64,000 nt of DNA from the NCBI GenBank assembly GCA_050084985.1, contig JBITNC010000001.1:72416001-72480000 (forward strand), read 5' to 3'. Positions within the stretch are counted from its first letter, which is position 1, and each line of letters opens with the position of its first letter. The translations under genes were made by a program, and so were the position numbers. The stretch is from Nageia nagi (lineage: Eukaryota > Plantae > Pinophyta). Below, in pieces: positions 1 to 58,054 of this stretch. The notes beneath the pieces are model-generated. The model was not told where the DNA came from. It searched no databases and saw only the letters and a list, made by a program, of their open reading frames with translations.

Positions 1-296
1 TAAATGCATCTGTTGTGCCTTACACAACTCGCCCCCTAAATTTTGCAATTTCGAGGACCCTCGACAATCTGGAGCCTTGAATGTCAAGTCAAAACCATTT
101 CCCCTTGTCTCCAGTAAATCCATAACCTGAAATTGAAGTGTAATCGCCTATCCAGCCCTAGCCATCTCAAAGCGTATAGTAAAACCTCATAAATTAACTA
201 AGTCTGGCTGAGTGTAGATCAAGGTCTAAGTGGTATAGGGAAGTCCAAGTCAAGATTCAAGCTGAAACGAACGGACCCAGGCTCCTCCTAGGCTTG

Positions 297-1245
297 GCGC
301 ATGCTCCAAGAAGACAAGATTGTCTTTTTGGGACGTGCGCCCAGCCTGGAAGGAAGCCTGGCTTCGAAATTAAGTTCCAAAACGCAAACTGGGCCACTCC
401 TTGAACCAACGCATGTCATGAAAAGACAAAATCTTGTCTTTCTGGGGCATGCGCAAGTACAAGAAGGATCCATGAAATCAAGCCCGAAAAAGGACAAGTT
501 AGTGCATGAGAAGACTGGCATAGGCCTCAAAAAGACAAAATCTTGTCTTTTGGGAGCATGCACCCAAGCTCGAAGGTTGCCCGAGAAGACTTGGAGCCTA
601 GAAAGAAGAAATACACTCACCTAAGGGGTTGGCACATGCCTCGAAAAGACACAATCTTGTCTTTTTGGAGCATGTGCCTAGCCTAGGAAGCCCCCCAAAT
701 GGGACGAAATGGAGAATTTGGTAAGGCATGTTTTGAAGCTTGGAGCACACTCCAGCATAGCCAAAGTGGCTAGTGCATGCCTCCAAAAGACAAAAACATG
801 ACTTTTTGGAGCATGCGCCAAGCCTGGGAAAGCATCAGGCGGAGCAAGTATGGGAAAATGATAGTCCAGGGATCAGGAGGCCAAAACAAGGCAAATATGG
901 CCATTTGCAACCCAACACATGCCACAAGATGACAAGATTGTGACTTTTGGGAGCATGTGCCTAGACTGGGAAGTTGGAGAAGTTGGATGGAGTTTCAAAA
1001 AGACAAGATCCTGTCTTTTGAAACCATGCCCCAGGCTTGGGAAGGACCCTGGGTCAAGTCAGGAGGAGAAAATGAGCAAGTCGAACCCCAGAGAATTAAG
1101 CACCAAGCAAAATCAAGGTCAGGACGGTGCTTAGGGTCAAGTTGGATGAGTAGGAACACAAGGAGGGCCAATGTTGGGAATGCAACCACCCCAAGGGCTG
1201 GGCATGCCTCAAAAAGATGAAACTTTGTCTTTTGGGAGCATGCAC
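297..1245 (+). repeat. Array of 8 spaced palindromic ~44-46 bp repeats (GCATGCCTCAAAAAGACAAAATCTTGTCTTTTTGGAGCATGC-like)
   Basis: Copies start at about 297, 409, 518, 632, 773, 915, 986 and 1200. Each is an imperfect inverted repeat; the intervening spacers differ from one another. Confidence 0.9.
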
Positions 1246-1400
1246 CAAGACAAAAAACCTCAGAATCCCAACGATTGGTCCCGGACGGTCAGGAATAAGG
1301 TTTCAAGATGGCACACATCTTGAGGTCGACCACTTCAATGGTTGGGATGTGTTTTCCTCCAAAACTTAGCCAAACTAGGGTTTTAAAAATGCCCACATCA

Positions 1401-1410
1401 GCTATAAATA
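1401..1410 (+). promoter_or_regulatory. TATA box upstream of E1 gene
   Basis: GCTATAAATA lies between the array and the ATG at 1623. Homologous GCTATAA(A/G)AG occurs in E2 (~24416-24425, -) and E3 (~49070). Confidence 0.55.
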
Positions 1411-1622
1411 TTAACTTGGGGACCTCATTTTCCCAAATTCAAATCACACTCTCTTCTACACTTGCACTGAAATTGCAGATTTTTGAGTTTCAAATCCATC
1501 CATTTGCTTGGGGAGGCTTGCGCAAGAGATATAGGATGATAGGAGGAAGACGTGGGGGTCATAGGCTTGCCAAAAAAAAGCAACACATCACCTCGAAGGG
1601 TCCCGTCATTTGTTAGGGCATC

Positions 1623-2664
1623 ATGACTAGTTCCAAAAGCAATTTGGCCAAGGAGTATGCACGAGATCTGGAATACATCAAGCAAGAATGCCTCATCACC
1701 ATATGCGAGCGACAAGACCCTTACCCAGGGGGCTAAATTCTCCAAAAATGGGTTGGCCACTATCAAGGACACAGACTGGCAGAAGGTGGATCCGATGCAG
1801 ATGAGGGAGAAGATTAGGAACAAACCCATCACAAGTTGAAACAAGACATCGTCTTCTTCTCGAGGCTCTCAACTTGTACATTCATCCCATTCATAGCTCC
1901 TTTCCCAGAGTTGTGCTTGGAAGTTGGCCAGCATTGGAAGATGGGTGAGAGTGCTCCGAGACATGAAGGGCAACATCATCATGGACTTCAGCCTCGAAGG
2001 CATCAAGAAGGCATTCCAGTGGATGGTAGAAGGCAACTTTAACTACACAGAAAGAGGAGTCGTTGGCATGCTATCGGGACACCAACAGGGTAGCTGGAGC
2101 AATCAAGAGTTGGATGTTAGAGGAGCACCATGGTCTAAAGGGTAATGCACCTATCAATGCCCCTCACTCCCACTTCTACCCCTCTGTTCAATTAATGATC
2201 CTCATGTTGTCAAGAGTTCTTAGGAAGGAGGATGCATCCAAGTTTCGAAAGGAGTTCTTCGGCTTCATCGTCGAGATAACCCAGGGAAAGAAGATCGAGT
2301 GGAGCAAAGTGTTAAGCGACAGTATCATGGACCAATTGTCATTAGTAGGAACCATACACAAGTTCTACCTCAACTCTTGCTTGGTATACCTATTACTGCA
2401 TTGCAAACCGAGGCCCACAGCTTTAGGAGAGGCAGACTTGACCACAAAGGGAACATACGCAATGTGGAAATGCTATCCTAAGTGGAAGGTCGAGAGAAGA
2501 TGGGAAGACTTCACAATGAGGAGTGATGGATGGGAGTACAAAATTTACAAGGACCTTAAGGGAGAGATTATTGTTGCTAGGATCTCCAACATAGCCCAAG
2601 ATGTGTTGAGAAGACATGGAGACTTCTTCACACACCACCAACACTACTCTTACATCCGTCTCTA
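1623..2664 (+). pseudogene. E1 gene, N-terminal conserved domain (retrotransposon accessory protein, possibly PMD/Transposase_28-like); frameshifted and cut by Athila LTR
   Basis: ORF fragments 1657-1839, 1836-2042, 1924-2145 and 2063-2664 join up. Motifs IPFIAPFPELCLEVG, MLSRVLRKEDASKFRKEF, KFYLNSCLVYLLL, YPKWK and DGWEYKIYKD match E2 (IPFATPFPKLCYEVG, MMSRVTSKEDDYKFRNEF, KFYMNSYLIYLLL, YPKWW, DGWEYQIYKD). Confidence 0.75.
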
Positions 2665-4219
2665 TGATGAGTTAAATAATGACACTCCAAATTCCCCCAG
2701 GGCTGTCACTACCCTCCCCTTAGTGATCCTCACACCTGTTATTGTGAAGGGACCAGTTAACTCAAAGAGTTGGTACACCAACACTCAGGAAAGCTTTTAG
2801 TTGCCTCTCACTAAGTTTGGAATATCAACATTTATCCTCTTCATTACTTTTATCAAATCCGGGAGGTGTTCAAGGTTGTATGCTATTGAGCTCTGCTCTC
2901 TAAGCTGTATCTACTTCAAGCAAAGTGGCAGAAAGCAAATGTGCAGAATTGAACGTTGCAGAATTGAAAGTACAGGAATCTGAAATACTAAAAGAGAGAC
3001 AAACTGGAAAATGCTGAACTTAAAGCAAACTCACATTTGGAGTGGGCCCTTGCTCCTCTTGGTGGAAGACTTAGAGAACTCAGAACTGGAAACTCTTTAA
3101 CAGATCACTTTATTGTTGCATGCAGTTCGTCTTACATAGAATGTGCTTGACAAATCTAATACAGAGCTTCAACACAATAATCTATTCACACAATACTTTC
3201 TTAATTTTCTAACCCCTCCTACCGTCAACAATTGAGGTATAAAATATCTTCCATTGTTTAACAATAGGTAGGTCAAGAATAACCATAATCTGAACAGTAT
3301 TCTGTTATGGAAAACAGAATCATTTATTCTACTAACTGGCTAATACTAAAATTATCATACTAGTAGTATCCATGCCCTGTCTAAAGAGAGCTGCAATCCC
3401 TTAGAAAAAGGGATAGCTCATCTCAACAGGTCAACACTATCCTATTTACATTCATAGGTAGTTTTTTATGCTTAAATTGGAGTCAAACATACTCCAAAAA
3501 CAAGAATCATATTTGACTATATCTGATGTGTTGAAACCATGCTTATACAGACTATATCTGGAGCAGTTCATATCTCCTAAATATCTGGATCATACAAGGT
3601 TAGAATAGAGCTAACAATATAGTCAAAGATGACAATCAACTGCTTAGATCTAGGCCTGGAGTGGAAGCTCCGGACAAGTTTGAAGCAGGAGCTCCGGATG
3701 AGTCCAACATAGAGGCTCCAGACAAGCTTGAAATAGAAGCTCCGGACAAGCTTGAAATAGAAACCTTTGACACGTCTGAGTTGAAGACCTTGGGTGAGTT
3801 GAGAAGGGCTCCAGACAAGTCTGGAGGAGAGCTCCAAACAAGTCTAGCTCTTCTTTATTCAGATGAGGCGCCAACTATGTCTGGAGCGGAGCTCCGGACG
3901 ATGCAGACCTGTGTAAAAATCTGTCTGGAGCGGAGCTCCAGACAATGTAGAATTTGTTCAAAGGCATCTTCACAAGACTTGCAACCCATCCAAATTACCG
4001 ACCATCATTCTATGTAGCAAAAAGAAGCATTTTTGTTCAAAACAAACACAAAAGTATAATCAGTATGCACAAAATACTAATATAAGGAAGGTATGCATTT
4101 AACCATATATTAAGCAACTAGATAGTTCAACCATTACAAATAATCCGTCCCATAATGTCCAAATATACAAAATGAACTATTGAACCGTGCCAAAACCAGG
4201 TAATTTCTGAGACTCATCA
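2665..4219 (-). repeat. 3' LTR of Athila copy 1
   Basis: Terminal inverted repeats TGATGAGT...ACTCATCA. Homologous to 32722-34569, with fewer 24-bp repeats. Confidence 0.93.
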
Positions 4220-4271
4220 CTCTCACCAGCTGAAAACATTGCTACCCCTGGAGCAATAAAAGGAGACAGTT

Positions 4272-6547
4272 TCAATTAGAATCACTGGAACTGTCATCAA
4301 CAGTAACAACTGATGGAGCATGAACTAGATGAGTCAAATCATAGGGTCCGTCAGCGAGTTGCAATCTTTGGCAGGTCCGAATGTCAATGGTGCCTTGTTG
4401 AACTTGTGGAACACTTGCTCCTCCACCATGTTGCCGGATAAGCCGAGACTCCCAAGTTCTAAATGTAGCATTTGATTGGGGCCCGTTTTCATTCTCATCT
4501 GGAACAGGGAATAGAAGTAACGGAGGACGAAACTGACTACCAACCCAATTATCAGGATCTCTTTCTAGCAGAGAGATGAGAGAGAGAGAGCTCTCCTTCT
4601 GCTCCAATATAAATTACCAGGTGTGAACATTTCATGAACACGGAGCTCATAGTGTAAACCCATCCAACGTGTGTTACAACACACAACAGCTTCATCAAAC
4701 ACAGTGTGAAGAGTTTCTCGGCATTCCTGTACACATTGTGATATTGCTGCTTTATACTGGGCTTTAATGGGGCCCTGTACAAGAAGTGCATGCAATGCAG
4801 CCTGAAACTGTTGGGGAAAGTATATTCGCATTGGAAAGACATCATTCTCCTAATTGTTCTGGAATTGAGCTATTTCTTTTTCTCCACTGAATCTGATTTA
4901 ATAGGGCAGAAATAAAGGCCCTTAACTGGACTTCTCCCACATACAGGTTAACAAAGAACCCCTGATCAGACGGAACAAAGAAACCGTGAATAAAGCATTC
5001 ACACATCAAGAAGCATTGCTCTTCCGAAGCAATAGAATATTTCCTGAAGAAATTGTTTGGGGGTGTCTAAACAATAAGGTCGCCCTTTCGTAAGCTGTGA
5101 TAACTGCCATCTATAGAAAAGTTCTTTCAAATATACACTGTAAACTGATGAAGGTGAGCCTAGGCGTAGAATTTCCTCAAAGATGGAGGAAGCATTCTGG
5201 ACAAGTTGCCTTGGAACAGCAGAGGTTTGGGAGAGTGCCGCAACTCTACGCTGAGCTTCTTCAAATTTATCTTGTAGACTCTGATGCTCAGCCACCAACT
5301 GTGTATGTACTGTGTTGAGATCAGAAGAGGCATATTGTTCCTGCGCTATCTGATATCTTAATTCTTCAATTTCCTGTCCCAGCCTAGCAGTGGAAGCTTT
5401 CTCTTCTGTCAAAGTAGACATACAATCAAAATTCTGCTGAATTCTGTCCTTTAAAGCTAACTGTTCAGCTGTGATGTGCTTAATCATTACATGGAGTGTC
5501 TGTGCGTCCATGTGTTGTCGCCGCATTGTGGCATTAGCTACAGCCAACTCTCTGTTTTTCTGTTCTGTCTCAGCATATTGGGCACGCAGAATCTGATTTT
5601 CTTGCTCCAATTGTTTAGTCTTTCCCTCTAATTCCTGAACCCGAGTTAATAGCAATCCATATGACACGTCTAGAGTAGTAGGCGAATTTGCAGTCACAAA
5701 ATCCGGCTGCAAACTGATAGAAGCTTGTGGTGATGCAACACGTGATCTCTTCCTACACGGTCTAGCGGAAGACTCTGCATGTGGTTGATAGATGGAAGGC
5801 TTATCTTGGATATGAGCTGTTGGAACTGCCTCTACCCGATTTATGCTAAATACAGGTACTGTATCCGTTTCAGCAGCCTCCTCCTTGCCTTTTAAAAATG
5901 CTTGCCAGGCTTCTCCACCAATTTGAAGAAAATACTCCCGACAGATTAGAGTGATAAGTCCATGGTGTTTCAAAGGTGAAATCTGATTCGACTCACGCCA
6001 CTTAGCAGCCATGGACTGCAGACTGTCAAATAAATGTTGGGGAATATTATACCTATACTTTGTTGGGTGTCGTAATTGAACCAATAGTCGCATCTGATGT
6101 CCTTGCAGTGTTGCATACTAGCCCTCACAAAAGAAATATTTCAGCACCCAGGTGGCAACTTCACTCCAAGGCTCGGGTAGGGAAACGCGATTAATTCCTC
6201 GGTTGCGTCCTTTGCTCGTGAATTTAGTTGCGCGGGGTTTAGCAAGATGATGGAAGGCGTCGAGAACATCATCCGGCGATTCCTTTCCAAGTGTCAACTC
6301 TTCGCCTTCAGCAGGGATACCAGAGATGGAACTGATTACTGCAGGAGAAACTGGAATGGTGTGCCCTCGCAGAGTAACAGAATTCTCATTCAATTCGGCT
6401 GCAAACTGCCGCACCAACCAGAGTTCATGGCCCTGAAATTTGTCGAAAAAACGGAAGCCATTGGGCCGTGGCAAATATTTCTGACACCCTTTGATCCTTT
6501 CGAAGCTCTTCCGTTGAGCTGGGTTCTTCTCGGCGCTTCTGACCCAT
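4272..6547 (-). pseudogene. Athila 3' extra ('env-like') ORF, ~760 codons: conserved N-domain, coiled coil and unknown C-domain; disrupted
   Basis: Runs MGQKRREEPSS...WLPFFDKFQGH...KYFFCEG...LKHHGLITLI, then a heptad region, to ...TVDDSSSDSN*. Sits between pol and PPT; copy at 41532-43803. Confidence 0.8.
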
Positions 6548-7830
6548 TTTTCTGACAACCAGTTGGTCTGCAAATGCTTGGTTGGAGTTTGAATGTGGCG
6601 AGGTGGCGAACAGAGCATTAATGGCGGATGGTGGTGTAGCGTGAAAATGGATGTCCGGTACGTGTGAGGATGGTAAGGTGATATACCACTGATTGCATGC
6701 ATGATAATCTGGAGCCGCCGCTTGCCTCCAATGAATCACATGTCATGTGAAGGACGTTTGACATGTGTGAAGTATTGGTTGATGTGAAGTAAAAAGGTGG
6801 TGGTTGATTTGTGTGCAGGGAAAAAGGTGTTAGTTGGTTTTATTTATGGCATGGAAAGAGGTGGCAGCCAGTTTTTGAACCGTGTGCCATGGAGTGGTGA
6901 GTATGGATGTTTGGATACGTGGATGTACTTGGTTACTGAGCTGTCCCGTGGTCCGTTGTGCTGCGCTCCCGACAGGTGACGTGTCCTTGAAGACTGGTCC
7001 ATCACGTTGTAACTGAAATCGTGTCAAGCGCATTGTGCAAGGGAGGTGACGAAGAAACTGGCAGCTCTGGAAGTGTTCAGAGAAACATCGTCCAACGCTC
7101 CAGTCACCATACGTATGCAAGATTCACACCATCTTTCGGAACTAAAATAGTCCCTGTTGACATGGGAATTCTGCATGTGACCCTGCATTATTATATAATA
7201 TATATATAATTTTAAATAATTTTTTTTTTCTCGTTTTTTTTCTTTTTTTTGTTTGCATATAATACTAAGCTTCTTGTGTTTCCAGTGTCAATGGTTTTCA
7301 CCCGACAAGTGTCAGTTTCCTGATTTTCACTTGTCGACTGCCAAATCCACTGGAATCAATGTTCCACACGCCTGGGGAACGGGGATACGGGGGAACGCGG
7401 GAACGCATATCCGGGAACGGTGGGGAAAAAATAGGGTCTTTTGGGGAACGGCAGGGAACGGCAAACATAATACTAGTAAAAATTATTAGATTTTTAAGAG
7501 TATCATTTCCAATTCATTTTTATTATGATGAATGATCATATTATCAAATTTAATTATGTATGATGTATACAAAATTACAAATTAAAAACATGGAATCGAA
7601 ATTACTCAATTAGAAATTCAACTTCATAGCCCATCAAATTAAAAAAGCCCAAGGGTAAACCACTAAACCGTAAATCTGATAACACAATCATAATATCATA
7701 GGCCATAGCCCATAGGTCTGAAAGACTGAATGAAATACATAGATGGGACATCAGTATGTCGAATACGGAATACGAATAAGTGTTTGAATAACAAAATGAA
7801 AATGCCAAAATATTAAATAACCACTATAGT

Positions 7831-18600: not shown

Positions 18601-20129
18601 AATTTGAAGAATGTGAAGAGGAACCAAAAGAAAATGGATTTACATGTGTACCTTCTAGAAAGTACTTGGTGAGGTCTCATCATTTTAAGTGAGGTTATCC
18701 ACCTTTGCTCCAAAGTATTTCCCAATGGCTGCCCTCTTCCTTATTGTGTAGATGAGCCACTTCTAGGCTAGGGAGCATCCCTAAGCCCTAGAAGGTAGAG
18801 AAGGGAAGCATCCCTAAGGTCTGAATCATCCAAGATCTAATGCATAAGATGACGTCTTCAAATGACCAAATGACTTTGTTGATGTGTATTCCTTTCCCCC
18901 CCGCAGGAAAGAACATCGCCCGTGGGTGGAGTAGCGTTACTTACCCCGCTTGAAAGGACTTTAACTCCAAGGTTTCTTTAAAATATATTGATTTCAACAT
19001 TATAGTGCAACGATTTTAAACCATGGTAGTTTGTGGTTGACAGGATGGCCCAGCCCCTTAAGGAAGGTATGCGCTCAGGGATGGTTAACTCACAATTATG
19101 CGGACCTATTGAGGTTTATCTCAATTGATGTTCACGTGACAGTACACAAGCAAAAGGGGTATGAGGAAGAAATATGAGAAGGTTTCGGCGGTTGATAGTG
19201 AAATAAGTAATAGGTTCTTACCGCTGTGCAAGGTTTGGGGCTTTCATCTCTCAGATTTATTAAGAATTTCTCCTTAGGTTATCAAGCAAGGGAAGAAACG
19301 ATTGGGTCTGGATCTTTCCCAAGCAAGAGCATGGGGAAGTAGGCAGGGTGGACAAAGAAGTGAAATGGAGTATTCAATTATCTATGTGCCAGTAGAAGAT
19401 TCCAATCAAATGACACAAGAGTAAAGTGACCCAAAATATCAAACTTTATGCAAACCACAAAAATAGTCATTCATACATTTAAGAAAGATATTCAATCCTC
19501 TTTTCTTAAAGTGCCAATCTTTCAAACAAAATGCTTGTAAATGTATAAACAACACAACAACATAATAAGCATGTCATTTGGGCATCTATGATTCCAAGAA
19601 ATGAGTGACTATACTTGCATTAATAACAAAGTTTCCCAAAATACATACATTGGAAGCCTCAACTCCAAAATGTTTCCAAAGAGAGATTTTGCTTTCAAAT
19701 CAAAAGGAACTCCTAACAAACATATAATTTTGCATACATTGAAGAGTTCACTCTAGCATCTCCTTCTTTTCTACTCTATCTATATCTATCATATCTATAT
19801 CCCATATCTATGTAAAAAAAATGACCTTGCTAGGGTACTTATAGCATATGTCTAACTTTATTAAATGAAGCGTCGCCCTAATATTAATTGCGGTGTTGTC
19901 CTAAACAATCAAGCAACCTTAATACTACTTTGGAAAAAGTGAAACCATCAAGAAAACAAAACTGCAGCTATACAATACCGCTGAAACGTCACATCAATAT
20001 CAAATCACATCACATCACATCAAGTCTTCTTGCGGTTGTGGCAGCAAAAACTCATCCGTCACAACGCAAGTTAAAATAATAATTATCTTAAAACTAATAA
20101 AATAAATATGCATTTTCAACTATTGCTCT

Positions 20130-23100
20130 GTGGGGCTAGCAGCTCATCACGATTGGCAACAAAGACTTTCTCAGAATCCCATGAGACCTATCATCGAAGA
20201 AGGCCCTAGCCTTAGTGAGTCCTATGGCAAGTGCATCTGCAATTCTTCATCTTTTTTGTTGTAGAAATCCAAGATGTAGTGGGAAGTGCATTCCATTTGA
20301 AATTTCCAAATGGTTAAGTTTTGTTGATTTTCAATGTGGGTTCCTGCTCTCAATAGATTTACATCGTTGGTGAAAATGAGCTTTCGGACAGTATTTTGAA
20401 CTTCTTGGATCACGAGCTCAACACGCCTTGACTTCCATCTTCATTAATGAACCCGATCAACTGTACAAACTGACTCAACTAAAAAGTTATAGTGAACAAC
20501 AGATTGTCCCTTGCCTTAGTGAGATTAGTGCATTCTCTTGCCACGAACCTTAGCCAACATAAATGGTAGGTGAACTCTGGCAATTTTGAATTTGGTTTGC
20601 TTGCCCTGCAGACATTTTCCTTAGGTTTTGGATAGTGTGCTCATGATTATGAAAATCCTACAATAACTAGGAAACGACTGCGTTCATATTCTCTTTTGCC
20701 TTATGTTCATCCATGAGGCTAGCCATCTAGAGTAAAAGTTCATAGACTATCCTCATTATGCCATTAACTAGGATCTCCTCGGTTGATGTCACACCAATTT
20801 TCAATGAGGCTTGCACCTTGACATCTTCAATGGACATTTTGGCAGCTTCTATCTCCTTCACCAATTTTTTTTACCAACCATCTCCTTTTCAGCTCCTTGA
20901 TTTTACACTCGCTTTTAATGCCTTGATTGACCATCTCATCCACATTATAATTGATGGCGTGCTTACATTCTACCCACCCAATTTTCTTGACTTTGAACTC
21001 CTTGGTGTGGACTCGCACATCTTGTAAATGTTGAGGATGTTTCTTCTTAGAATAGCATCTGTTGATGGTCATCGCATCCTTTTTCATGGATACGAAGGTA
21101 TCTATTTCTTCAATTGGAGAATCCTCAGAGGCATTCTCCATCCTTTGGCTATATTCTTCTTTATCACTACAACAACTCATCTGGAGGTCTTTGATGACTG
21201 CGTCAATATGAAAATCATACTTTTGTGGACCAGAACTTGATGCAATATTGGCCATGGTAGTGTGCATGTTAGTGGTGGGAATTCTCTAGGGATCTCCTCG
21301 ATTCTCAACTATTGGCTCTTGACTTCAACTGGCTTATCTTTGATCTTTAATGGTTTATGGTTGCCATGCTCTAGTTGTTTTCTCTTCTTTCTTTGGTCTT
21401 CCTCTCGCCTTTGTCTTCTTCATCTCCTCCATCTCCTCTGGCTGTATAAGCCTTGCTTAGATTAGAGGGCTTACTAGGGGTTGTTTTGGAAACTCCTTCT
21501 TTGGGGATGACCTCCTTTTCCTCCTTGGAGTGGTGGACTCAGAGGAGGTAGCCTTGTTCACAGGTATCGATCCAGTAGGTAAAGTCTCGCTAACCTTCTT
21601 TGTTTCGGATTTTCCTTCAATGTCTACAATTTGGGTATCTTCAGTACCAGGTTGCGAGTCTTCATCATCCTGATGCTCTCTTTTAGTTTCTCCCTCTTCT
21701 TCTCCTGAACTAGATTCAAATGAGCCGAAAGATTCATACGATGTCTTAGAATCTAAAGGTGAACTTGAGTGTCAGGCTCTTCAGGTTGGTTTATTGTGGG
21801 TGTATTTTGGATATTGGTTTGGTTTCTGCTTCAATAGGCTCTAGGTATTCAATTCCTACATATTCTTCAACAGGCGTCACAAGACTTGGGAGAGCCAAGG
21901 GATATTCCACCCAAACTGGTACTATGGGCATCATGGGGACGTTCTTTGGGTGGCATTCTCAAGCTGTTGGAGTGGGAAATCAAGATACCCCATTTCTGCC
22001 ATGATATGGACGTATTTGGTGATTTCTTTGATAAGGAGTGGATTTCGGGTCTAGTTCTGCCCAAAGTGGCATATTCTCCTATTCCTCCTTGGTGTCTTCT
22101 TACTCTTGAAGAGGAGGTGGATTTCTCAACCGGGCTATGTGAGGCTCACTCAAATTTTGGATTCTTTTATTGATCCGGCCTTCAACCGCCAACACTTGAT
22201 GTACTTTCTTGAATTTGCTTTTCCTCTCTCCTATTCCTGTACCTTTCCTTGTCTCCTAGAGGTCTATGCTCATAGGTTATAGGGTTTATGAAAACTTGCC
22301 TATAAAAGACTTGCATTCTCCCTTCAGGGTCATAATGGGAAGTACCTGTTCCTACTAAAACAGTAGTAAGAACAGGTGTATTCCACAATGGTAATGGGGA
22401 GATTTATTGTAGCAAAATTCCATGAGAATCAACCGATTACTAGCATAGCGGGGTAGGAGATAAGGCTTGACTTCGGAACCATAGATCCACATGTATGTGT
22501 GTGAGGGGTCTTCCAAAAAGTAACTGCATGCCCCCGGATGGCTTGTACTTTAGAGTTAGAAATTCTCTTCACCATTTGTTTCCCTTTAATGTCCTTGTAT
22601 ATCTGATACTCCCATCCATCATTCCTCATGGCATAGTAATCCCATTTGGACTCCATCCACCACTTGGGATAAGCTTTCCATATAGGTTTTTCAGGATTGT
22701 TCAGGATTTCCATATCTGCATGTGTCAATTTCTGATTTTTTCCACTAAGGAGGAGGTATATGAGGTAGGAATTCATATAAAACTTCTTTGAGGAGCCGAT
22801 ATGAGCCAATTGGAAGAACAGGGAGTTACTTATCACCATGCTCCACTTAATCCTTTGCTTGTTCCCGATCACAACTATGAATCCGGTGAATTCGTTCCTG
22901 AATTTGTAGTCATCCTCTTTGCTAGTGACTCGAGACATCATGCTAATGATTCTCGAAATTGTGGGATAGAAGTTTTGTCTCTTTGCATTGATCAACTTAT
23001 TCCCCGAAAACTCCTTGCTTTTGTTTTCGAGCCAATCCCTAATGAGGTCTTTGACTCATTGAGATTTCTCATAGTAGTCTAGAGAGTCCTTTTCAGTGTA

Positions 23101-23520
23101 GACAACTCCATTGCTCCACTTAAAGGCCTCCTCGATGCCTTGTGGAGAGAAATGGAGGATCTTCTTGCAATCTATATCATAAAGGGCATGGTCTTTGAAG
23201 TTGGCATGCCTACCCACTTCATAGCACAATTTAGGGAAAGGTGTGGCAAAGGGGATCAAGGTGGCTGAGGCTAAACTGAATGTGCATATGAACTCTTTGA
23301 GCATCTGATTCTTGCTTAATTCATTGATGGAATGCAACAAACGATTGGGATCGGTGTGTGACCATTAAGTGTCCCGGATATTTGAGAGGTTGTTTTTGAA
23401 TTTTGCTTCCTTCAGCAGATCTTTAGGATTTTCTTTGGCAATGTCAATTTGGCTAGGCTCAGTCAATCTAGCTAGCTGAAGTTCCCGAGTATTTCTTAAT
23501 TTGGAGTTTTTCTTTGACAT
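20130..23520 (-). pseudogene. E2 gene, ~1100 codons: conserved N-domain, S/P/E-rich linker, Arg-rich NLS-like tract, coiled-coil C-domain
   Basis: ATG at 23520 (MSKKNSKLRNTRELQ), just after acceptor-like TTTATCTTTACAG. ORF fragments 23056-23340, 22429-22995, 22182-22388, 20827-21267 and 20222-20413. Homologous to the E1 and E3 ORFs. 3' end approximate. Confidence 0.78.
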
Positions 23521-24020
23521 TTTGAAACCTGTAAAGATAAATCAGGTCAGTAGAGAAAGGACTGATTGACACTAGATTGACTAGGGGAGTGGTGGGAAAT
23601 GATGTAAGAGACATATGATACCTGGAAAACTTGTATGCCTTGATAGAGGGGTGTGGAAATGCAAACATACTAGAAGTTTAATGTTTACGACGAAGAGGTG
23701 GTCGGCCTACTTAATGCAACGTCTAGAATGTGCTTTAAACAATTAATGCATGCATACATCCATTTAGCCACCTTATGGTACCCAACTTGTTATGAAGACA
23801 TGCATGAATGCTTGAAGGGCTTGGTCGCACCCAATTTAAAAGTTAATTTTCTAACTTGGATGATGTGACAGATAAGAAAGGTTGACTTTTATGTGACGTG
23901 ACAAAAATGGAGGGACGAGTACTAACATGGACAATAGACAACTACTAAATTGACTAAGACCAAACTTGACATATATTTAAGTGTGGGGCCCCTTAAAATG
24001 GGACTTCTTTAATGTGTGAG

Positions 24021-25391
24021 TGGGCGCAACTCGAAACAAAGATGCAAATGTAACCTTTAGAGATAATGCGACCATGCAACAAAGCATTTGACTTGACCAA
24101 ATTCGATTAAAACTTGCAAACTTTAATGGGCGCACTGTTTTCAAAAGATAGAACCTTATCTTCTTGGAGTCATGCGACCACACGTATTTAAGATGACCAA
24201 TGCAAAGTGAAACCAATGCAAAACTTTAATATTGAAACTAATGAAGAATGCCATGATGTTATTGGAAGGAAAGGTGATCAATGAATATGGACCGTTTAAC
24301 TTTAATGCAAGAAAGGGTGGTCGCATGCTTCAAGAAAATGCAAATGTAACTTGGAAAAACGATGCCATCAACCTTGGAAGGGTAAATGTTTTGCAAAAAA
24401 TTGACTAAGCCCCTTCTTTTATAGCTATCTTGGTTGCCAAATGGCAACGTTTTGGTGGCCAAAGGACAAATTCTCAACAAGTGTCGAATTTCATGCAAGG
24501 CATGTGGTCCGATCGTTCCAAAAGGATGCAAATGTATCTTCTTCAAACCATGCGATCAAGGATAGGGGTGCTAATTTTCACACTTAATAAAAAAAAAATG
24601 AACCGAAAGGTGGTTGCATGCCTCCCAAAAGATGCGAATGTAACATTTTCAAACCATGCGACCAAGCTGAATTATGCCGAAAAGTGGACACTTGATAAAA
24701 AGATGCTTGAATAGAGTGGTTGCACCTTGCTCAAAAGATGGAATGGTATGTTTCTCCAACCATGCGAACAACCTTTTGAGTGTATTGGGCTAACACTTAG
24801 CAAAAACTTTGAAGGCCAATACAAGAAATGGGGTGGTCGCACCCTTTTCATAAGATGAAATTGTAAGTTTTGCCAACCATGCAACAACCTTGGAGCACTA
24901 CGTTGAACCAGCCAAGGTAATAATGAGAGTCTCTTCTCCTTTATACCAACATGTCATGCCAGGTGGCCATGCTAGACAACTAGGATGAAGGTCCAATGAG
25001 GTCAACGTGAGCTTCATGGTGCACGTTCAATGCCAAGATGGAGGTGGTCACACCTTTTCAAAACGATAAAAATGTAACTTTCCTGAAACATGCGACCACT
25101 TTTGGATGAGGCATTTGAGGATACTTAGCCAATTTATAGGCTCTAAAAGTTGAAAGAGGGGTGGTCGCACCTTTTACAAAAGATAGAAATGTAACTTCTC
25201 CAAGACATGCGACCACCTTGAGAGGAATTAAACTTGGTGAAATTTTTCCATTTTACCTTACTGCCTTGAGCTTTAATAGACCCTTTTGAGTGTCATGTGT
25301 CAGTGAAGGGCGACCATTTTAGAAAGAATGATGAGATCATGGTCGCACCTCTTTGATAGAAGGAAATGTATCTTCCCTCAACCATGGACCA
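24021..25391 (-). repeat. Array of 10 spaced ~53-bp repeats, + strand consensus TGGTCGCAY..CAAAAGATGCAAATGTAACTT..CATGCGACCA
   Basis: Copies start at 24021, 24127, 24318, 24505, 24611, 24717, 24834, 25045, 25162 and 25340. Inverted terminal arms TGGTCGCA / TGCGACCA. Confidence 0.92.
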
Positions 25392-26187
25392 CTACTTTTT
25401 GATGTGAAAACTTTGTGATTTTGCTTTGTTCCCAAAACATAGCCAAACTTTGTCAGATGCCTGCATTCCCTCGTTCTTTCATTTGTTGCAAGCAAGTATT
25501 CCGGTGAATTTTAAAGTTGCACATCGGGCTTATTGATTAGCTCATCTCTTCACTATGCTTTTCAAAAGGGTCTCTCCTTATTGGGCTCTGTTCTCCACTT
25601 TAGCTGAGGGTCCCCAAATTTCGAAAAATTAGGGAGGTGTTGCTTCGACAACAGACTTGCCTTTATAGCAGTCCAAACTTGTCATTATTCCCTAAAAGGT
25701 AGCCGACTAGGATAGAGGGAATAATAAATTATTAAATGGTGCCAAACCTCCCTAATATGGCTGACTTGGACATGGGGGCATAATTCATCTCAATGGCCCT
25801 TTTTCATAGCTTGAATAAATATATAATTTGCCCTTTTTGAGCGTTTGCATTAAAGGCACAAATATAGATATCATAAATACATAATTTGACAAATAAATCA
25901 TTCCTTTTCTAAGTCCTAAAGATCACAATGAATAAGCATGATGGGAGATGTTTAGATGTTCCAAATTGGGGACATTCCAAAGGAAGGTACAAGCAGTGGT
26001 AATGCAAAACAAACCAACAAGATTAGCCAACCGCATAACATTTCTATAGGCACTAGTAGTGTAGTGAGGTGTGATTTTTTGTCCCTTGTAGTAGTCTTGG
26101 TCACCAACCCTCACTTGACTCTACATGGAACATGTATAGGGTGCAAGAAGCTAGAAAGGAAGTGGCCGATTTCTAGTATTACTTGAC

Positions 26188-34569: not shown

Positions 34570-34572
34570 TTT

Positions 34573-34590
34573 TGGCGCCGTTGCCGGGGA
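34573..34590 (+). promoter_or_regulatory. Primer binding site, tRNA-Asp (Athila-typical)
   Basis: TGGCGCCGTTGCCGGGGA, 3 nt after the LTR end. Confidence 0.9.
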
Positions 34591-34780
34591 ACGGTGTTGA
34601 TTGAGCTATCTCTGTAGTTCTTAAGGATAGGGGACTTGACAGAGCCAATTTGCAATCGGGTGCCGTCCTGGTTCCTCAATTCTTAACAGAATGAGTGGCC
34701 CCAATAACCTATATTAAGAATCTGCAGAGAACTGTTGTTGAAGTTGTGATAGTTTGGTTTGATTATTTGCTTGAGAATGT

Positions 34781-40720: not shown

Positions 40721-40766
<46 letters not shown>

Positions 40767-45840: not shown

Positions 45841-48117
45841 CAACTTGAGGAGATTTGTCTGGTTTTCTTTGATGATATATTGGTGTACTGTTAAATGTGG
45901 GAGGAACACCTGCAACACTTGGACATCATTTTCGGCATTTTGTAAGTTCAAAAATTCTTTGCTAGGCAGTCCAAATGCGAATTTGGGAGGACTGAAATTT
46001 TGTATTTAGGGCATGTGATCTGCCATGAAGGAGTGAGGATGGATGAGCAAAAAATTGTAGCAATCTAGAATTGGCCGGTACCCACCCCCCTTTGACACAA
46101 TTAAGGGGATTTTTGGGGCTATGCAATTACTACATAAGGTTCATCTGTGGTTTCTCACACTTGGGTGCCTCTTTGACACAATTAACCAAGAAAGATGCAT
46201 TCGTTTGGAGTGCTGAAGCTCAAAGGTGCTTTTGAGACTCTAAAAAAAGTTATGTGCTCTTGTTCAAAAAGGACAGCCAATAGCATTTGAGAGCAAGAAA
46301 CTCACTAATGTAGAACAAAATTTCATGTATATGACAAGGAAATGTTGGCTATTATGCATGCATTGGAGAGATTTAACAATATCTAGTATGTGAGCCTTTC
46401 ATTATCAAAAGTGACCATAATAGTTTGAAGTATTTTCTAAGCCAATCAAATTTGAGCAAAAAGCAACAAAGATGGGTAAGTAAACTTCAATCCTTCGATT
46501 TTGAGATTTAGTAAATCAGGGGGAAAAAGAATATAACTGCTGATACATTATCCAGGAATCCATCTTTTTACTCTCTCTTCTATTTTTGCTGATTGAAAAA
46601 TGAATATCATGTTTGAATATGTTAAAGATTAATTTGCTCAAAGCATTTTAGATGGGAAGGTGAAAAATGAGAGGTATACAGGAAAATATAGGCTGATGTA
46701 GAAAAATAACATGATTTTCTTGACCCTTAATTCAAAAATGAAGGAAAGGGTGCTCCATGCTTTGCATAATATACTCCTTGCAGGTCATCCAAGAATTTGA
46801 AAACGTACAAAGCAGTTAGGAGAGGTTTGCATGGAAGGGGATGAAACTGAATGTTTATAAGCACGTTAAGGAGTGTGAGCAATGTCAGGAGAATAAGGAG
46901 GAAAATATGAAATCGGTAGGATTACTTTGACCACTACCCTTCCACAACAGAAATGGGAAGATATTTCTATGGATTTCATCATGGGCCTTCCAAAAGTGCA
47001 AGGTAAAGATTGTATTTTTGTAGTGGTGGATAGCTTACTAAATTTGCCCATTTCTTTGCCATTACCATCACATATACAATAGTACAATTGGTTGATTTAT
47101 TCTTTAAAGAAGTATTCAGATTGCATGGTTTTCCAAAGAGGATTGTGAGTTATAGGGACAACAAGTTTATGAACATGTTTTGGCAAGAGCTCTTTTAGTT
47201 GAGTGGCACTAACTTGACCCCAAGCACTAGCTATTCATCACAAAGTGATGGACAAACAAAAATAGTAAATAAATGGATAAAAGGGTATTTGAGGCATTAT
47301 GTAATAGGGCAGCAACAAATGTAGGTCAAATGGTCCATACTGGGAGTATTGCTACAACTCTATGCATGAATTGTCTATAGGAATGTCCCCTTTCAAATCT
47401 TTGTATGTTTATGATGCTCCTAACTTTGCAAATTTGACTTTTGATGAAGGGAAAGCCCCAAAAGCTAAAGATTTTTGCAAAAAAGCCAAGATATTATAAC
47501 AGCTCTACGAGAAAACTGCAAATGGCCCAAAATCTCAAAAGAAGTATGCTGATCAAAGGAGGACCGATAGAGCTTTTGAAGTAGAGGAGATCGTGTATTT
47601 GAGGTTGCAACCATTTAGTCAATCCTCACTCAAGAGAAAAAGAGAAGAAAAACTACAACCTAGGTTCTTTGGTCCATACAAAGTCTTACGCAAGGTTTGG
47701 GAAGCTGCATATGAGCTTGAGCTGCCCAAAGAAAGTAAGATTCACAATATTTTCCATTTGTCAATCCTTAAGAAGGCGTTGGGACAGCAATATACATCAT
47801 CAACTACCCTTCTGTTGAGGAAGCAACACCCCCCTTAATTTTTCGAAATTTGGGGACCCTCAGTCAAAATATGATAATGGAACTTAGCAAGAGTGGAGCT
47901 TTGGGAGAATCACTTTTTAGAGCATAATGAAGACAAGGTAGCCAAATGAGCCCAAAGTGCAACTTTAAAATTCACCCAGAATATTTGCTTACAACAAATG
48001 AAAGGTACTTTCTAAGTATCAATCCAAATGAAAACGAAGGAAATGCAAGTATCAGATGAAGGCCTAGTTAGGTTTCGAAGAATGTGCAAAATCACCTAAT
48101 TCTCACATAAATGGTGG

Positions 48118-49460
48118 TGATCGCGTGGCTAAGGAAGATACATTTGTGTCTATTTTTAAAACTGCAATCATAATCCTCACTTCCAAATAGCCGCCCCTTC
48201 AATGACACTTGGCACCTGAAATTGTTTATAAAAGAGCAAGAGGCTAAGACAGAAGTATTTGAAATTTGCTAAGTCAAAGGTGGTCGCATAGTTTTGAAAA
48301 GTCACCTTTCCATCTCTAGAAAAGGTTTGACCATCCCCTCAACACTATTTTGAGCCTATAAATTGGTTGAGTGCGCCCAAAGTTCACCCTCCAAGCTGGT
48401 CGCACGGTTTGGAAAAGTTGCATTTGCATCTTTTTGGAAAGGGCGACCACCCCATTTTGGCATTCAATGTGCATCCTCCATCTCATTCGACCTCCATTCT
48501 GGCTATTTAGTAGTTTACACGTGGCATACAAGCCAGTATGAAAGAAAAGCAAGGTAACCTAATTTTTACTTTAGCTAGTCTAACGTGTTGCTCCAAGGTG
48601 GTCGCATGGATGGCAAAAGTTAGAATTGCATCTTGTTTTGAAGGTGCGACCACTGCCATTCCTGCATTTTGGTCTCCAAATTGGCTAGGTGTTAATCTAA
48701 CACCCTTGAAAGTTGGTCACATGGTTGGCAAAAGTTAGAATCACATCCTTCTTTTGGGGTGCAACCACCCCTTTTGAGGAATTTTGAATTGAATTTGCTT
48801 GGAGTAGTCCATTTTGGGACATCTCCTAGTTGGTCGCATGGTTTGAAAGTGTTACGTTTGCATCTCTTGTGAAGCATGCGACCACCCCCCTTTTGCTTCA
48901 TTTTTGACCAAGTGTTGAATTTTGGCACCTCTATCCTTGGTCACATGGTTTGAAATTGATACATTTGCATCTTTTGGAGAGATGCGACCACAACTTGTTG
49001 CATGGAACGGAACACTTGTTGAAAACCTTGCCTTTAGCTGCCGAGGTATTGCCACTTGGCAATGAGAGGGCTATAAGAGTGGGAGACTTTGTCAATTTTA
49101 CATATCATATGCCTTCCCAAGGTTGGTCGCATGGTTTTGCTAAGACAAATTTGCATCCTTTTAGGAACATGTGACCACCTTTTTTGCATTAAAGTCAATC
49201 GACCCTATTCATTGGCCACCTTTTTAGTCATTGAAAGTTTGCATTTCATTTCACGATAGCCACCTTTTTAGTCATTGAAAATCTGCATTTCATTTCACGA
49301 CAACCACTTTAGGGTTGCATGATCGCAAGGTCCCAAGAAGATAAGGATCCATCTTTTGAAAATAATGCGTCCATTGGAATTGCAAGTTTAATTAAAGATG
49401 CATGGTCGCACGATCCATATGAATCACAATTGTATCTCTGTCTTGAATTTTCCCGTGCAT
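48118..49460 (+). repeat. Array of 10 spaced ~53-bp palindromic-arm repeats, homologous to the E2 array
   Basis: Starts at ~48118, 48281, 48397, 48599, 48714, 48831, 48938, 49124, 49320 and 49404. The spacing pattern parallels E2. Confidence 0.9.
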
Positions 49461-49735
49461 GCATGCAAGAAGTCTTATTTTTAGGAAAGGGTCCCACACT
49501 TTGATGCTCATCGAAATTTGGTTTCATTTAGTTAGTCTTTGTTATTTGTGTTTTTACATCGTCCCTTCATTTTAGTCACATTGCATAAGGTTAATCTCCA
49601 TGTTTGGTCACATTATCCATCCAAGTTAAAAAGTTAACATTCTTGAAGGGTGCGACCAAACTTTTGTGCATTCACATGGGGCCCATGAGTTAAAAACGTG
49701 CATATGCATTAATTTTTCAAGGCTCATATCGTGGA

Positions 49736-51728
49736 TTGTCACCTTCTCCTGCTCATACTACATCTTCACCAAGAAAGACACTCTTGCTTCCTGCAGGAAA
49801 GAGGCAAGAGGCTCCAAGGGAACCTATCCCAGGACCTAGCAAGCGTAGCATGGTGATGGCAGATCTCAGAGACGTTGGCTATCATGCTCTCTCCTCAGAT
49901 GTGCTAGATGATGTAGTGAATGTAGCTTGTGCTAGTGATTCACCTACCAAAGTAGTCCCTTCCAGACCAATTCATTCTCCTAGGTGTAGGGAGAAAGTTC
50001 CCCCTTTACAACCAAATTCCAGTTCCAGCTCTAAACGTTCCACTTCTTCTTTTGATGAAGAAACTGATGAGGACCTTGGCCGTGCGGTGGAAGATTTTGG
50101 AAAAGAATTGGAAAGCCGTAGTGAAAGAGAAGAAGAAGAAGATGATGATGTTGATAAAACTGCCAATATTCCTAACTAGGAGGACGTAGTTGTAGATGCT
50201 TTAGCACTTGATGAGACAAAAGTTGAAACCATCCTAGATAATGAGATTGTGGATGTCAGTACTTATGATGATGACGTCCAGATAGTTGGAGAAAGGTGCG
50301 CTAGGGAAGTGGATGCCTCGAAATCCTCTCCTGCTGACATAAGGAGAAGTCCCCTTCTTCGCATAAGTCCACTAAGAGGACGAGTCATATTGATCTCCTC
50401 AGCCATGAAACAAGGCCATGTCCATAGGCGGTGATGGAGGAGATGACAAAGAGAAGATGAAGGAGAGATTGAAGAGCAGAAGAATAAAAGGAGGTAGGAA
50501 GAGCATCGGGGCAAAGAGATAACCCTAGTTCAGATCACTTCAACAAAAGGGGTCAAGAAGATTGGTAGAGGAAGGTTGTTGGTTCAAATATTTCCCCCTC
50601 GACCAGCAATTGAACACCCTGATCTTCACTTGGATGCCTGTCTTAGAGCCCTCAACATGAGCACGGTCCATGATGAAGACATAGATGAGGACTTACGCTT
50701 TGTAGATGAAGAGGAAGAGCTTTCGGATGGCAAGAAGATTATAAGGGTTGACACTTTCGTCTCCACCTCTCAAAAAGAGATCTTCATTATCCATTGCTAT
50801 TCAAAGGAGAAGCACCCTCAGAGAGCAGAGGACTGTGTTATTGAAACATTAAATATGCTTGCGAAATTGGAGTTGACAACCAGAAAGCACATAGTTATGC
50901 AAAATGTTGTAGTCATGGAGCAAGAAGGCTACGAAGCCAAAAAGGAGGGTAAGAGGTTGAAGAAGGAACTCACGGATAGCAAGAAAATCATCAGAGAGTT
51001 CTAGAAGGTTAGCATCACCCCCTTAGATTTACAGAGGCAAGCTTCCTTCCATGAAGTGTGGGAATTGATGAAGCAGCAGCTTAAGAAGGAGGTGATGAGG
51101 CTATCGAGAGATTGTCTTCACAAACTTACAAGCTGATTGCTGAAGATGTTGAAATCAAAGACCTCAAAGCAAGCATCTCAGCACACCTTGGCAAGTTGGA
51201 TACCTATCTTCCCAACATCTCTCACCTATAGCACGTTTTTGCTGATAAACCAAAAAAATTATTCTATTGCCACGAGTTCACCTATCATCATGATTGGTTG
51301 AACCATAGACTCAAGAAGTACAATGCTATCTTGAAAACTAGAATCCCCTTGAGAAAGGAGGTAGAGGAACAAATGAATGAGAATATTTATCAACTCAAGT
51401 TCCAAGGGGAAGACAACAATGTAGGAAGAAGGAAGCAATAATGGCAAAGGCTCATAATCTGTTGTAGGAGCATCTTGATATTGATGACCTTAGTTTGTTG
51501 AAGGTAGGGCATCCCATCATCCATGAGAGGCGGATGGTCATCTGGAGACACCAGATGCAGGCTACATCAAAGAAGATTGAAGATTATTTTCAGCAGAATG
51601 GCATCACTGTTGGCATGATCTTTAGGGGCATGCAGAAGATTGTTGCATTCTTAGAGGAGACCATTGAGTCATACAGTCTCACCAATGAGGAGTGGAACCC
51701 CGCTAGTATCGGATTAGATTTGGCCTAG
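49736..51728 (+). pseudogene. E3 gene, C-terminal half
   Basis: DLHLDA..VDTFVS..IIHCYSKEKHPQ and IWRHQM match E2 DFHIDA..IDTFVS..INRCYSKKKHPQ and IWKFQM. Confidence 0.75.
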
Positions 51729-53144
51729 GTCTGATCCACCCACAAATTTCGTCTACGGTATCCTGTTTTGTGTTTAATGCATGATTAACGTTGGTTTATT
51801 ATGTCAGACCATATTTCATTTGATTTGACTGGTGTAGGGATGAGGTTTTTCTCCCACCAGATCAAATCCGTCAGACTCTTTTATGGCTCTAACTGGTTAG
51901 GGATGAGGTTTTGCTCCCACCATCCTAGATGTCAAACTTTTCAGACCTTTTATTGCATATCAGATTTGCTTTTGCATAGATTAGGGGTAGATTAGACGCA
52001 TTTTGACGATGGCATTTATATTTTGTCATCTTTTAGATGCCACTTGCATAGTTTTGTGTGGACGATCTGATTTTGTATTGATATGCGTGTTGCGTGTGTG
52101 CACACCATATTAGATTTGATGCCTTAAGGGCAACACTTCTAGTGGCCTATTTATACCCCATCCAGGCCATTTAGAAGGGAATTTTTGGTGCTAGGGATTT
52201 TGCATTGGATTAGGACAAAAGAAATTTTTGCATTGGACTTTTGCATATGAGATATTTACATTGGAGGATCTTTGCAATTTTGCATCCAAATTGTTGCATG
52301 ATTTGACGCATTGTTGCATATGCGAGACTTTGTATTTAATAGAAATATTGTATATTTGGGCTCTTTCACCTTTGAGATTCTTGCTATCAAGCCTATGTAT
52401 GTAATCAATTTGAGCAATTGCATCTTTTAGTATTTACATTCCATTGCATAGAATATTGCTACATAAGGGGTTCTATGCATGTTCATTATTGAAGATCATT
52501 ATGAATGTATTTCTCTTGAGGAATGAGATTGTAAAGTTTATATTGTGAAGGATATCATTTGTGGAATTGTGCATATCTGGATGGTTCTCTCCTGAGGTTG
52601 CATATTGAATATCCATTTGGTTGGTTTGAGTTGTTCTTTGCATGATTTGCACGTACGTGACTGTATTTTGAGGCCTATAGCTTGACTCCACTATCCTTTC
52701 CCACCCAGTCTTCCACCGAGACCCAACAGCTTGTTGCTCTCGTCTAGTAGTGATTTGAGCATATTTGCTATTTGCTGCCTGACTTGATAGTGAATGCATC
52801 AACCTTAATGAATTTGAAGATGACTGCTGAGAAACTGCATCATTGATGATACTTTCATAAGCCTTTCTTTCCTCGTGTTCCCTTGCATTTATCCGTATTT
52901 TTGTCGCTACATTTGTGATCTTTCTTTGCTTTCATTCATATATGCAGTCTTTCCTCATTGTGAAAAGGAACTCCAACATGTATTTCCCTTGTATACGGTT
53001 AACAACATACATCTTTGACTACTGAGCCTTGAAGACCATATTCTATGTGAGCGCTTGGGTAACCAGTTCTTTCAGGCAATTCAAGTAACGCTATTTCCTC
53101 CAAGTCCTGTGCATGTTTTGGACGGAAAGAAAAACATACCAACA

Positions 53145-56558: not shown

Positions 56559-58054
56559 TGATGGTATGTTTTTCTTTCTTCTCCCAAAACATGCACAAGA
56601 CTTGGAGGAAACAACATTACTTGTTTCCGCCTGAAAGGATTGGTTAACCCAAGCGCTCACATGGAATATGGTCTTGATGGCTCAGTAGTCAAAGATGCAT
56701 GTTGTTAACCGTATACAAGGGAAATACATGTCGGAGATCCTTTCCTTAATGAGAAAAGATTGCAAATGTGAACGAATGCAAAGAAAGATCACAAATGCAG
56801 GAACAAACATAGAGATAAATGCAAGGGAATGCGAGGAAAGGAAAAGACCTATGAGAACATGATTAGGGATACAGTGTCTCGACAGGTCATCTTCAAATTC
56901 ATTAAGGTCAATACATTGACTTTCAATCTGGGAAGCAAATAGCAAATATGCTCAACTCACTACCAGACGAGAGTAGGAAGTTGTAGGGTCTTTATGGAAG
57001 ACTCAATGGAAAGGGTAAAGATGGAGTGAGGGCGTATATGTAATAACCTAACCGAATGATATAAAGACAAGTTGTAGGCCTTAGAATATGTCCACTTGCA
57101 TGCAAACCATGCAAAGAAGGATCAAACTCTTTCACAAAATAGTCAATATTTAGTTCATAGAAAGAACCATTCAGATATGCATAATCCCACAAATGATGTT
57201 CCTCACAGTATAACTTTATGATTTTATTCCTCTAAACAAACACATTCATGATTCTTTTCAATAACAGAACATGCATAGAACACCTTATACAGCAATCTTC
57301 TATGCAATGGAATGTGAATCTTATGACATGCAAAGGCTGAAAATGATTGTACAAATAAACTCAATAGGCTCAATCTCAAAATGCAAGAAGTTCAATATAT
57401 AATGCTTTTATTACGTGTAAAAATCCAATGCAAAATAGTACAAAGATCATATGCATAAACTCTTCATGTCAAAATTCCTCATGCAAAAATCCAATATGTC
57501 AAAATCCCCTTCTAAATGGCCCGAGTGGGGTATAAATAGGCCACATGAAGTGATGCCCTAAAGGCATCAAATCTGATATGGTGTGCACACATGCAACACA
57601 CATACCGATACAAAATTAGATTTCTTCACACAAAACTATATAAGCGGCATTTAAAGATGACAAAATATAAATGCCACCGCTGAAATGCATCTACTCTACA
57701 TCTAATCTATGCAACAGAAAATCAGATATGCAATAAATAGTCTGAAAAGGTCCGACATTTAAATCGGTGGGAGCAAAATCTCATCCCTACACTGGTTAGA
57801 GTCATAAATGAGTCTGACAGATTTGATCTGGCAGGAGCAAAACCTCATCTCTAAACCAATCAAATCAAAATAAAGTAAAGTCTGACATAACCAACATAAT
57901 CATATGCATGTAATACAAAAAAGATACTGCAGATGAAGTCTGTGGGTGAATCAGATCTAGGCCAGATCTGATTCGGCACGGGCGGAGTTCCACTCCTCGC
58001 TGGTGAGACCATAGGACTCGACATTCTCCCCTAAGAATGCCAATGTGATGTTCC

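Follow-up and report, generated by a model that had tools for sequence, protein, structure and literature searches.

Analysis of a 64,000-nucleotide stretch of the Nageia nagi genome (contig JBITNC010000001.1, positions 72,416,001 to 72,480,000; hereafter the window) reveals arrays of long, spaced palindromes in the upstream region of a gene carried by a mobile unit that resembles a long terminal repeat (LTR), and purifying selection acts on the palindromes as well as on their spacing. The window consists of plant DNA packed with nested retroelements; the carrier units in it, named E1 to E4, are listed in Table 1. Quite possibly, although we stop short of calling it probable, the palindromes serve as operators at which the unit's own protein, with a predicted VANC/PMD-like fold, binds for self-activation or anti-silencing; the binding itself we infer.

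The array of E1 (type A) consists of eight dyad-symmetric units about 48 bp in length, situated ~160–1100 bp upstream of the TATA box, with the last unit ending ~155 bp before it. With up to three mismatches allowed, the 22-nucleotide core of this type has 9 matches at 5 loci in the window and none in 100 shuffles. A preliminary description, made from the letters of the DNA alone, had reported the same eight palindromes as near-perfect; the number is correct, but arm pairing is 65–89% Watson-Crick and the label fits only about half of the units. Symmetry often runs on into the flanks, giving arms of up to 26–28 nucleotides. Because of insertions and deletions in the arms, palindrome finders run in ungapped or strict gapped mode miss most units, and motif-guided alignment was used instead. 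The peaks of information content are AAAGACAA/TTGTCTTT and the outer GCATG; conservation extends beyond pairing to the sequence itself. E2 and E3 carry another array type (type D), the core of which, AAAAGATGCAAATGTAAC, has 10 matches against 0.13 expected. The ten units described earlier for each of them are all recovered in E2 by a gapped scan, whereas E3 has nine and one degenerate tenth. In six of six arrays the first unit begins 262–308 bp from the TGTTG terminus, and the arrays are confined to the 1–1.4 kb upstream region in E1, E2 and two further copies, L001 and L002. These measurements agree with the preliminary description, which had placed the start of the arrays ~260–305 bp from the element end and the arrays directly upstream of the gene (in E1 the gene starts at ~1623). 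Three of the E2/E3 units, as it had also noted, fall downstream of the TATA-like site when the two elements are aligned.

L001 and L002 come from a search of metagenome contigs for loci with relatives of the gene, which returned 15 loci; they are independent E1-type copies with upstream regions, while L003 and L004 represent the L002 locus again. The terminus of E1, with its hairpin TGTTGTG..CACAAC, aligns with those of L001 and L002, the flanks of the three are unrelated, and all three carry eight units in the same order and spacing (L001:8229-9183 and L002:3141-4030). In the three-way alignment, invariant ungapped columns make up 65% of the units against 36% of the spacers (Fisher p=5e-16), and pairwise identity is 74–77% in the units and 48–55% in the spacers, the latter being about the level that an aligner returns for unrelated sequence. 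The preliminary description had proposed to look for more conservation in the repeats than in the spacers, and this is what the alignment gives. In the adjoining coding sequence, dS (synonymous divergence) ranges from 0.6 to >3, with synonymous sites saturated, and dN (nonsynonymous divergence) is 0.11–0.25; the units have therefore survived a divergence large enough to erase neutral sites. Between E2 and E3, identity is 74% in the units and 64% in the spacers (p=1.5e-4), and gap columns number 6 in the units and 95 in the spacers. Orthologous units are slightly more similar than non-orthologous ones (0.75 vs 0.72, p=0.035; 0.77 vs 0.70, p=4.5e-4); the main constraint is towards the consensus, with some position-specific memory.

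Spacing is conserved as well. Distances between unit centres are 108–114, 142, 75 and 210 bp in E1 and 106–118 and 178–210 bp in E2, in line with the spacings given earlier, and they are kept between the saturated copies (114/114/116, 142/145/145, 142/144/145 and 75/72/70). Over all arrays (window 296-1246, 24020-25392 and 48116-49373; L001:8229-9183; L002:3141-4030 and 12316-13139) the spacings fall on multiples of ~36.5 bp (p ~0.002 for 21 non-redundant spacings, allowing for the scan of the quantum), in classes of 72–75, 106–118, 142–145, 178–190, 202–218 and 260 bp. This quantum is shorter than one unit and hence is not a tandem-repeat period. When Logan contigs from four public runs (at most three samples, four studies, no run recorded as RNA) were placed on 1-2660, their depth in the palindrome bins was 10–100 times that in the spacers, leader and gene, and the contigs break exactly at the unit borders 421, 452/454, 524 and 561, beyond which they continue into unrelated sequence. 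Depth and breaks together indicate that the unit is common to very many copies with differing spacers.

A constant skeleton (GCAYG, AAAAG, 12–14 nt, CTTTT, YGC) recurs across the array types while its centre varies. The dyads are 45–58 bp long, with outer arms of GCATG/CATGC or GGTCGCA/TGCGACC lying ~42 bp apart; conserved AAAAG/CTTTT shoulders come next towards the middle, and then a subfamily-specific centre of 12–14 bp. Counted on the consensus sequences, the span from GCAYG to YGC is 42–43 bp in types A, B and D, and the earlier observation that the span is kept between subfamilies while the inner sequence differs is confirmed. The centres GACAA/TTGTC, GACAT/ATGTC and GTCAT/ATGAC differ by changes that are matched on both arms, and because these variants change in step, the dyad symmetry itself must be maintained. 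The unit at L002:12019-13450 has a TATA, a block like a 5' untranslated region and a very homogeneous type-B array, in which four perfect dyads are nearly identical. No recognisable gene lies behind this array and the 3' end of the unit was not found; the unit represents a short relative without a gene or else a derivative that arose by deletion. E3, which is without the N-terminal gene domain, and this unit, which is without a visible gene, both retain good arrays. This is as expected of non-autonomous clients of a trans-acting factor, and enhancers for host factors predict the same. The type-C array of L011 is part of a separate inverted unit inserted beside the L011 gene, and its assignment to that gene was rejected. 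The inverted unit sits immediately upstream of this distant gene homologue (35% identity), which indicates that units of this family insert into one another.

The carriers are single TGTTG...CAACA units of 5.3–7.3 kb with perfect 5-bp target duplications (E2, E3 and the L002 copy). Their 5' terminal hairpin (TGTTGTG..CACAACA) and a 3' block made up of GTAACGCYA, a purine run and CAACA are conserved across subfamilies. No polypurine tract precedes the 5' ends (0/5) and no primer-binding site follows the 3' ends (0/4), in what is a small sample; there is no direct repeat between the two ends of a unit, and no LTR pair, gag or pol in E2, E3 or L002:2857-10125. Formally, then, the carriers are solo-LTR-like, no paired element having been seen in this small sample. 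The promoter block of E1 is invariant in E1, L001 and L002. Its telobox-like TAGGGTTT, located ~20–25 bp upstream of the TATA, is also present at L001:9315-9322 and L002:4161-4168 and is absent from the E2/E3 promoters. Teloboxes are Polycomb-recruiting promoter elements in plants, and the presence of one beside a PMD/VANC-like gene is suggestive. In L001, what we take to be exons of a host photolyase/cryptochrome-like gene (4440-4760, read from the translation) lie ~3 kb upstream of the E1-type unit, which would place this copy within or next to a host gene. The CACCC+TGTTG match at L001:4524 lies inside the same gene and was discarded as due to chance.

The gene itself is under purifying selection, the E1 gene having 19 homologues and dN/dS values of 0.05–0.18. 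In E2 it comprises a homologue of the N-terminal VANC/PMD-like domain (residues 21–320 of the conifer protein P0004 match at 23517-22615 in tblastn), an acidic linker and a C-terminal helical part, and the E2-type and E1-type proteins are 36–47% identical. In E3 there is no tblastn match for P0004 or P0012, the N-terminal gene domain being missing; its C-terminal open reading frame (ORF; 50576-51004) has its homologue at 20827-21267 in E2. One contig skips 126 bp at 1495-1622; as there are no GT..AG ends, this gap was taken as a copy variant and not as an intron. The protein family has 130 representatives in 1.84 billion, nearly all of them fragments. Pfam has no family for the window ORFs, for 10 long relatives or for 54 family members, hmmsearch against the PDB sequences gave nothing in favour of DUF1985/PMD membership, and a profile search of a large protein collection added no annotated relatives. 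AlphaFold modelling of P0004, with a shallow alignment, gives a pLDDT (predicted local distance difference test) of 42, whereas P0036, an intact distant relative of 488 residues with 54 diverse relatives, reaches 76, and >90 over most of residues 60–250. Foldseek against the PDB and a second PDB structure search returned no match, a result which in neither case excludes the fold match described below, and a whole-protein structure atlas search gave no usable match. In a language-model feature search the nearest named clusters include one of DUF1985 (0.86) and two of PMD (0.82 and 0.81), all below the 0.9 lead threshold. The resemblance of the modelled fold to VANC21/PMD is borderline. We give it weight because VANC had been proposed beforehand from the DNA alone and because of these DUF1985/PMD clusters; the protein probably belongs to the DUF1985/PMD superfamily.

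VANC21 binds YAGTATTAY motifs arrayed in the non-coding DNA of VANDAL21, and such targets diverge between subfamilies (PMC5735166). In both systems the transposon encodes an accessory protein next to arrays of a recurring motif within its non-coding DNA, related subfamilies have different motifs, and these are retained in non-autonomous copies; VANC21-DNA (9LNK) is the best structural match, a borderline one, of the modelled protein core. However, the carrier here is an LTR-type unit of a gymnosperm with a 5-bp target duplication, while VANDAL21 is a Mutator-like element (MULE) of Arabidopsis, a dicot, and a sequence-level DUF1985 match is lacking here. VANC is structurally homologous to the PMD protein MAIN, and according to a structural atlas it is restricted to dicots and arose from a MAIN-like gene of the host (PMC13547354). 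The PMD-C proteins MAIL1/MAIN and MAIL2 act via promoter motifs, one of which is palindromic, and resemble the DUF1985 of VANC (10.1101/2024.09.27.615353). With the present system they would share a PMD/DUF1985-like fold tied to promoter-proximal motifs that protect expression from silencing. They are, however, host genes acting through single short motifs at many host promoters, with direct DNA binding not yet demonstrated, whereas here multiple long sites share one mobile unit with the gene for the protein. Gypsy elements encode the PMD-A clades, and these extra ORFs of angiosperm Ty3/gypsy elements probably resemble our gene in being retroelement-borne accessory ORFs of the PMD superfamily (PMC5418596). 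They lie between the LTRs of complete elements and match Pfam PMD; in contrast, the gene here is located in a single TG...CA unit without gag, pol, primer-binding site or polypurine tract and has no Pfam PMD match. The maize Sirevirus elements (Ty1/copia) also have several hairpin-capable palindromes per LTR upstream of the promoter, with conserved symmetry and family-dependent sequence (PMC4728375). Their palindrome is a GC-rich 17-bp sequence (CACCGGACtGTCCGGTG) at four clustered loci, no accessory gene is linked to it inside the LTR and small-RNA targeting of it is documented; the units described here differ from it in sequence and length and have no copia genes attached.

The action of the conifer unit might be likened to that of the VANC and PMD-C modules. 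On this view an LTR-type mobile unit that carries a gene would have operator-like recognition sites, the arrays, in its promoter region, and each dyad would be bound by an oligomer, perhaps a dimer, of the unit's own protein. This protein would consist of an N-terminal domain of VANC21/PMD-like fold, then a disordered linker and a C-terminal part made of helices. Occupancy of many sites might keep the promoter of the unit active or shielded from silencing, and the promoters of gene-less relatives might be served in trans. A more specific version, about which we are rather doubtful, would have a single TG...CA gymnosperm module encode its own VANC/PMD-fold factor next to a long-dyad array set at ~36.5 bp quanta, with dyad centre and protein co-diversifying in such a way that each subfamily protects only itself, the whole predating the MULE case of dicots and being independent of it. 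Several observations weigh against operator sites for a VANC-like protein. The VANC21 motif is a non-palindromic 9-bp sequence in one orientation, made by tandem repeats (PMC5735166), whereas here there are 45–58 bp dyads, unrelated spacers of 70–215 bp and no repeat detectable by Tandem Repeats Finder. The match to VANC21-DNA is borderline and comes from the distant relative P0036. Neither the window ORFs nor their relatives match Pfam DUF1985 (PF09331) or PMD (PF10536), even at E values up to 10; in this respect the preliminary interpretation, otherwise partly supported, is not confirmed. Array type goes with protein type (A with E1-type, D with E2-type) in two linked lineages only, as types B and C have no visible gene, and the distant subfamilies L012 and L015 have no array in the available flank.

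Repeated, sometimes symmetrical motifs in the U3 region of LTRs usually function as enhancer modules for host factors. The palindromes might be such sites for host transcription factors, the neighbouring gene then being irrelevant, although we consider this unlikely. In its favour, the arrays precede a conserved TATA, their TG...CA carrier has 5-bp target duplications, gene-less units retain the arrays, and the sub-motifs AAAG, CATGC and TGTC presumably resemble plant factor sites. Sirevirus LTRs, too, have ~7 palindromes each in their cis-regulatory region, with family-dependent content (PMC4728375). However, units of 45–58 bp with two nested dyads and a fixed 42-bp span far exceed the usual length of a host-factor site, subfamilies differ in the entire centre but share the skeleton, and the fold predicted for the product of the adjoining, selected gene resembles that of a sequence-specific transposon DNA binder.

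Were the symmetry selected for single strands, the units would act as hairpins, either in RNA (transcribed by read-through, or within U3 of a genomic RNA, and yielding small RNAs or a structural signal) or as DNA cruciforms. The E1 units indeed have predicted folding energies of −15 to −40 kcal/mol (z −1.9 to −8.4, three units being weak), their stems of 18–28 pairs are close to the length of small-RNA duplexes, three E2/E3 units lie downstream of the TATA-like site, and Sirevirus palindromes are hotspots of small interfering RNAs and able to form hairpins (PMC4728375). Most palindromes, however, precede the TATA, so that the carrier's own transcript would not include them. The 606 type-A arm pairs comprise 454 Watson-Crick, 41 G.T, 39 A.C and 72 other pairs, and the equal numbers of G.T and A.C give no sign of a strand-specific RNA stem, in a test whose power is limited by decay after insertion. 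Furthermore, the arm sequence is conserved, no Rfam family is matched (the best match, a sub-threshold likeness to microRNA precursors, has 31 bits against a threshold of 96) and selection on the element would not keep a silencing trigger. Hairpin function is accordingly improbable as the basis of the arrays. That they are a functionless product of plain tandem repetition, now decayed, or of replication slippage is scarcely credible and largely refuted, despite one 71-bp local duplication in L002 (3716-3769 and 3787-3840), the loss of one whole unit plus spacer in L002 and the spacings at multiples of ~36.5 bp. Tandem Repeats Finder at its lowest score (minimum 30) detects no tandem repeat in 1-1700 and 23700-25700, the spacers of an array do not align with one another, the units are conserved between copies far above the spacers, and orthologous units resemble each other slightly more than paralogous units do. 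The preliminary description had likewise seen similar repeats with different spacers within an array, and had raised a decayed tandem repeat with alignable spacers as the case to be checked, which is not what we find. Orphan half-sites are not enriched in the spacers (1, 4 and 1 found against 1.3 expected); an origin of the spacers from decayed half-units was accordingly discarded.

The element that cuts E1 is an LTR retrotransposon (element B) present in two copies of opposite orientation, at 2664-14041 and 32722-45700; the LTR at 32722-34570 matches 2664-4219 in reverse complement. Element B has 1.85-kb TGATG...CATCA LTRs with a 24-bp tandem array inside (33187-33549 and 44321-44826) and the primer-binding site TTTGGCGCCGTTGCC. 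An insertion at 7358-13196 with hAT-transposase-like ORFs interrupts the copy that cuts E1. As a candidate for the autonomous partner of the carriers, the copy at 32722-45700 was rejected as unrelated, having its own type of LTR and primer-binding site and no palindromes.

Table 1. Carrier units, palindrome arrays and genes. Positions with the prefix L002 or L011 refer to metagenome contigs, all others to the window.
Feature	Position	Strand	Remarks
E1 unit, 5' part	21..2663	+	starts TGTTG; cut at 2664 by nested LTR retrotransposon
E1 type-A array, 8 units	296..1246	.	consensus GGCGCATGCCTCAAAAAGACAAAATCTTGTCTTTTTGGAGCATGCGCC
E1 units 1-4	296-341, 410-454, 517-564, 631-678		
E1 units 5-8	773-819, 916-961, 995-1032, 1200-1246		
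Conserved promoter block	1376..1410	+	telobox-like TAGGGTTT 1376-1383; TATA box GCTATAAATA 1401-1410
E1 gene, N-terminal part	1623..2663	+	decayed, with stops; tblastn with P0004/P0012; conserved ORF 2063-2662
E2, complete single unit, 6777 bp	18877..25653	-	TGTTG...CAACA; target-site duplication AAGTC
E2 gene	20100..23517	-	decayed; 20100 end approximate
E2 type-D array, 10 units	24020..25392	-	consensus in gene orientation GGTGGTCGCATGGTTTGGAAAAGTTACATTTGCATCTTTTGAAAAGGTGCGACCACC
E3, complete single unit, 5332 bp	47813..53144	+	TGTTG...CAACA; target-site duplication CCTTC; inside gypsy integrase
E3 type-D array	48116..49373	+	9 clear units; degenerate tenth near 49405-49460
E4, 3' fragment of fourth unit (1.5 kb)	56559..58040	-	74% identical to E3; terminus mutated to CATCA
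L002 E1-type copy, 7269 bp	L002:2857-10125		target-site duplication CTGAC
Type-B array in gene-less unit	L002:12316-13139		units GCGCATGTTTCAAAAAGTCATAATTATGACTTTTGAAATCATGCGC
Inverted unit with type-C array	L011:1155-1687		terminus at 1687

Sequence-specific anti-silencing by a transposon's own protein is documented so far only for VANC, in VANDAL elements of the Arabidopsis type. If the palindromes described here are operator sites of the protein encoded beside them, the conifer unit would provide the VANC system with a counterpart among retroelements, and modules of protein and motif would either be pushed back to the seed-plant ancestor or have had a second origin. The ~48-bp dyads and the ~320-residue domain are defined pieces for a direct test of this possibility, which, if true, would provide a concrete handle on how some repeat families escape from silencing in the giga-genomes of conifers.
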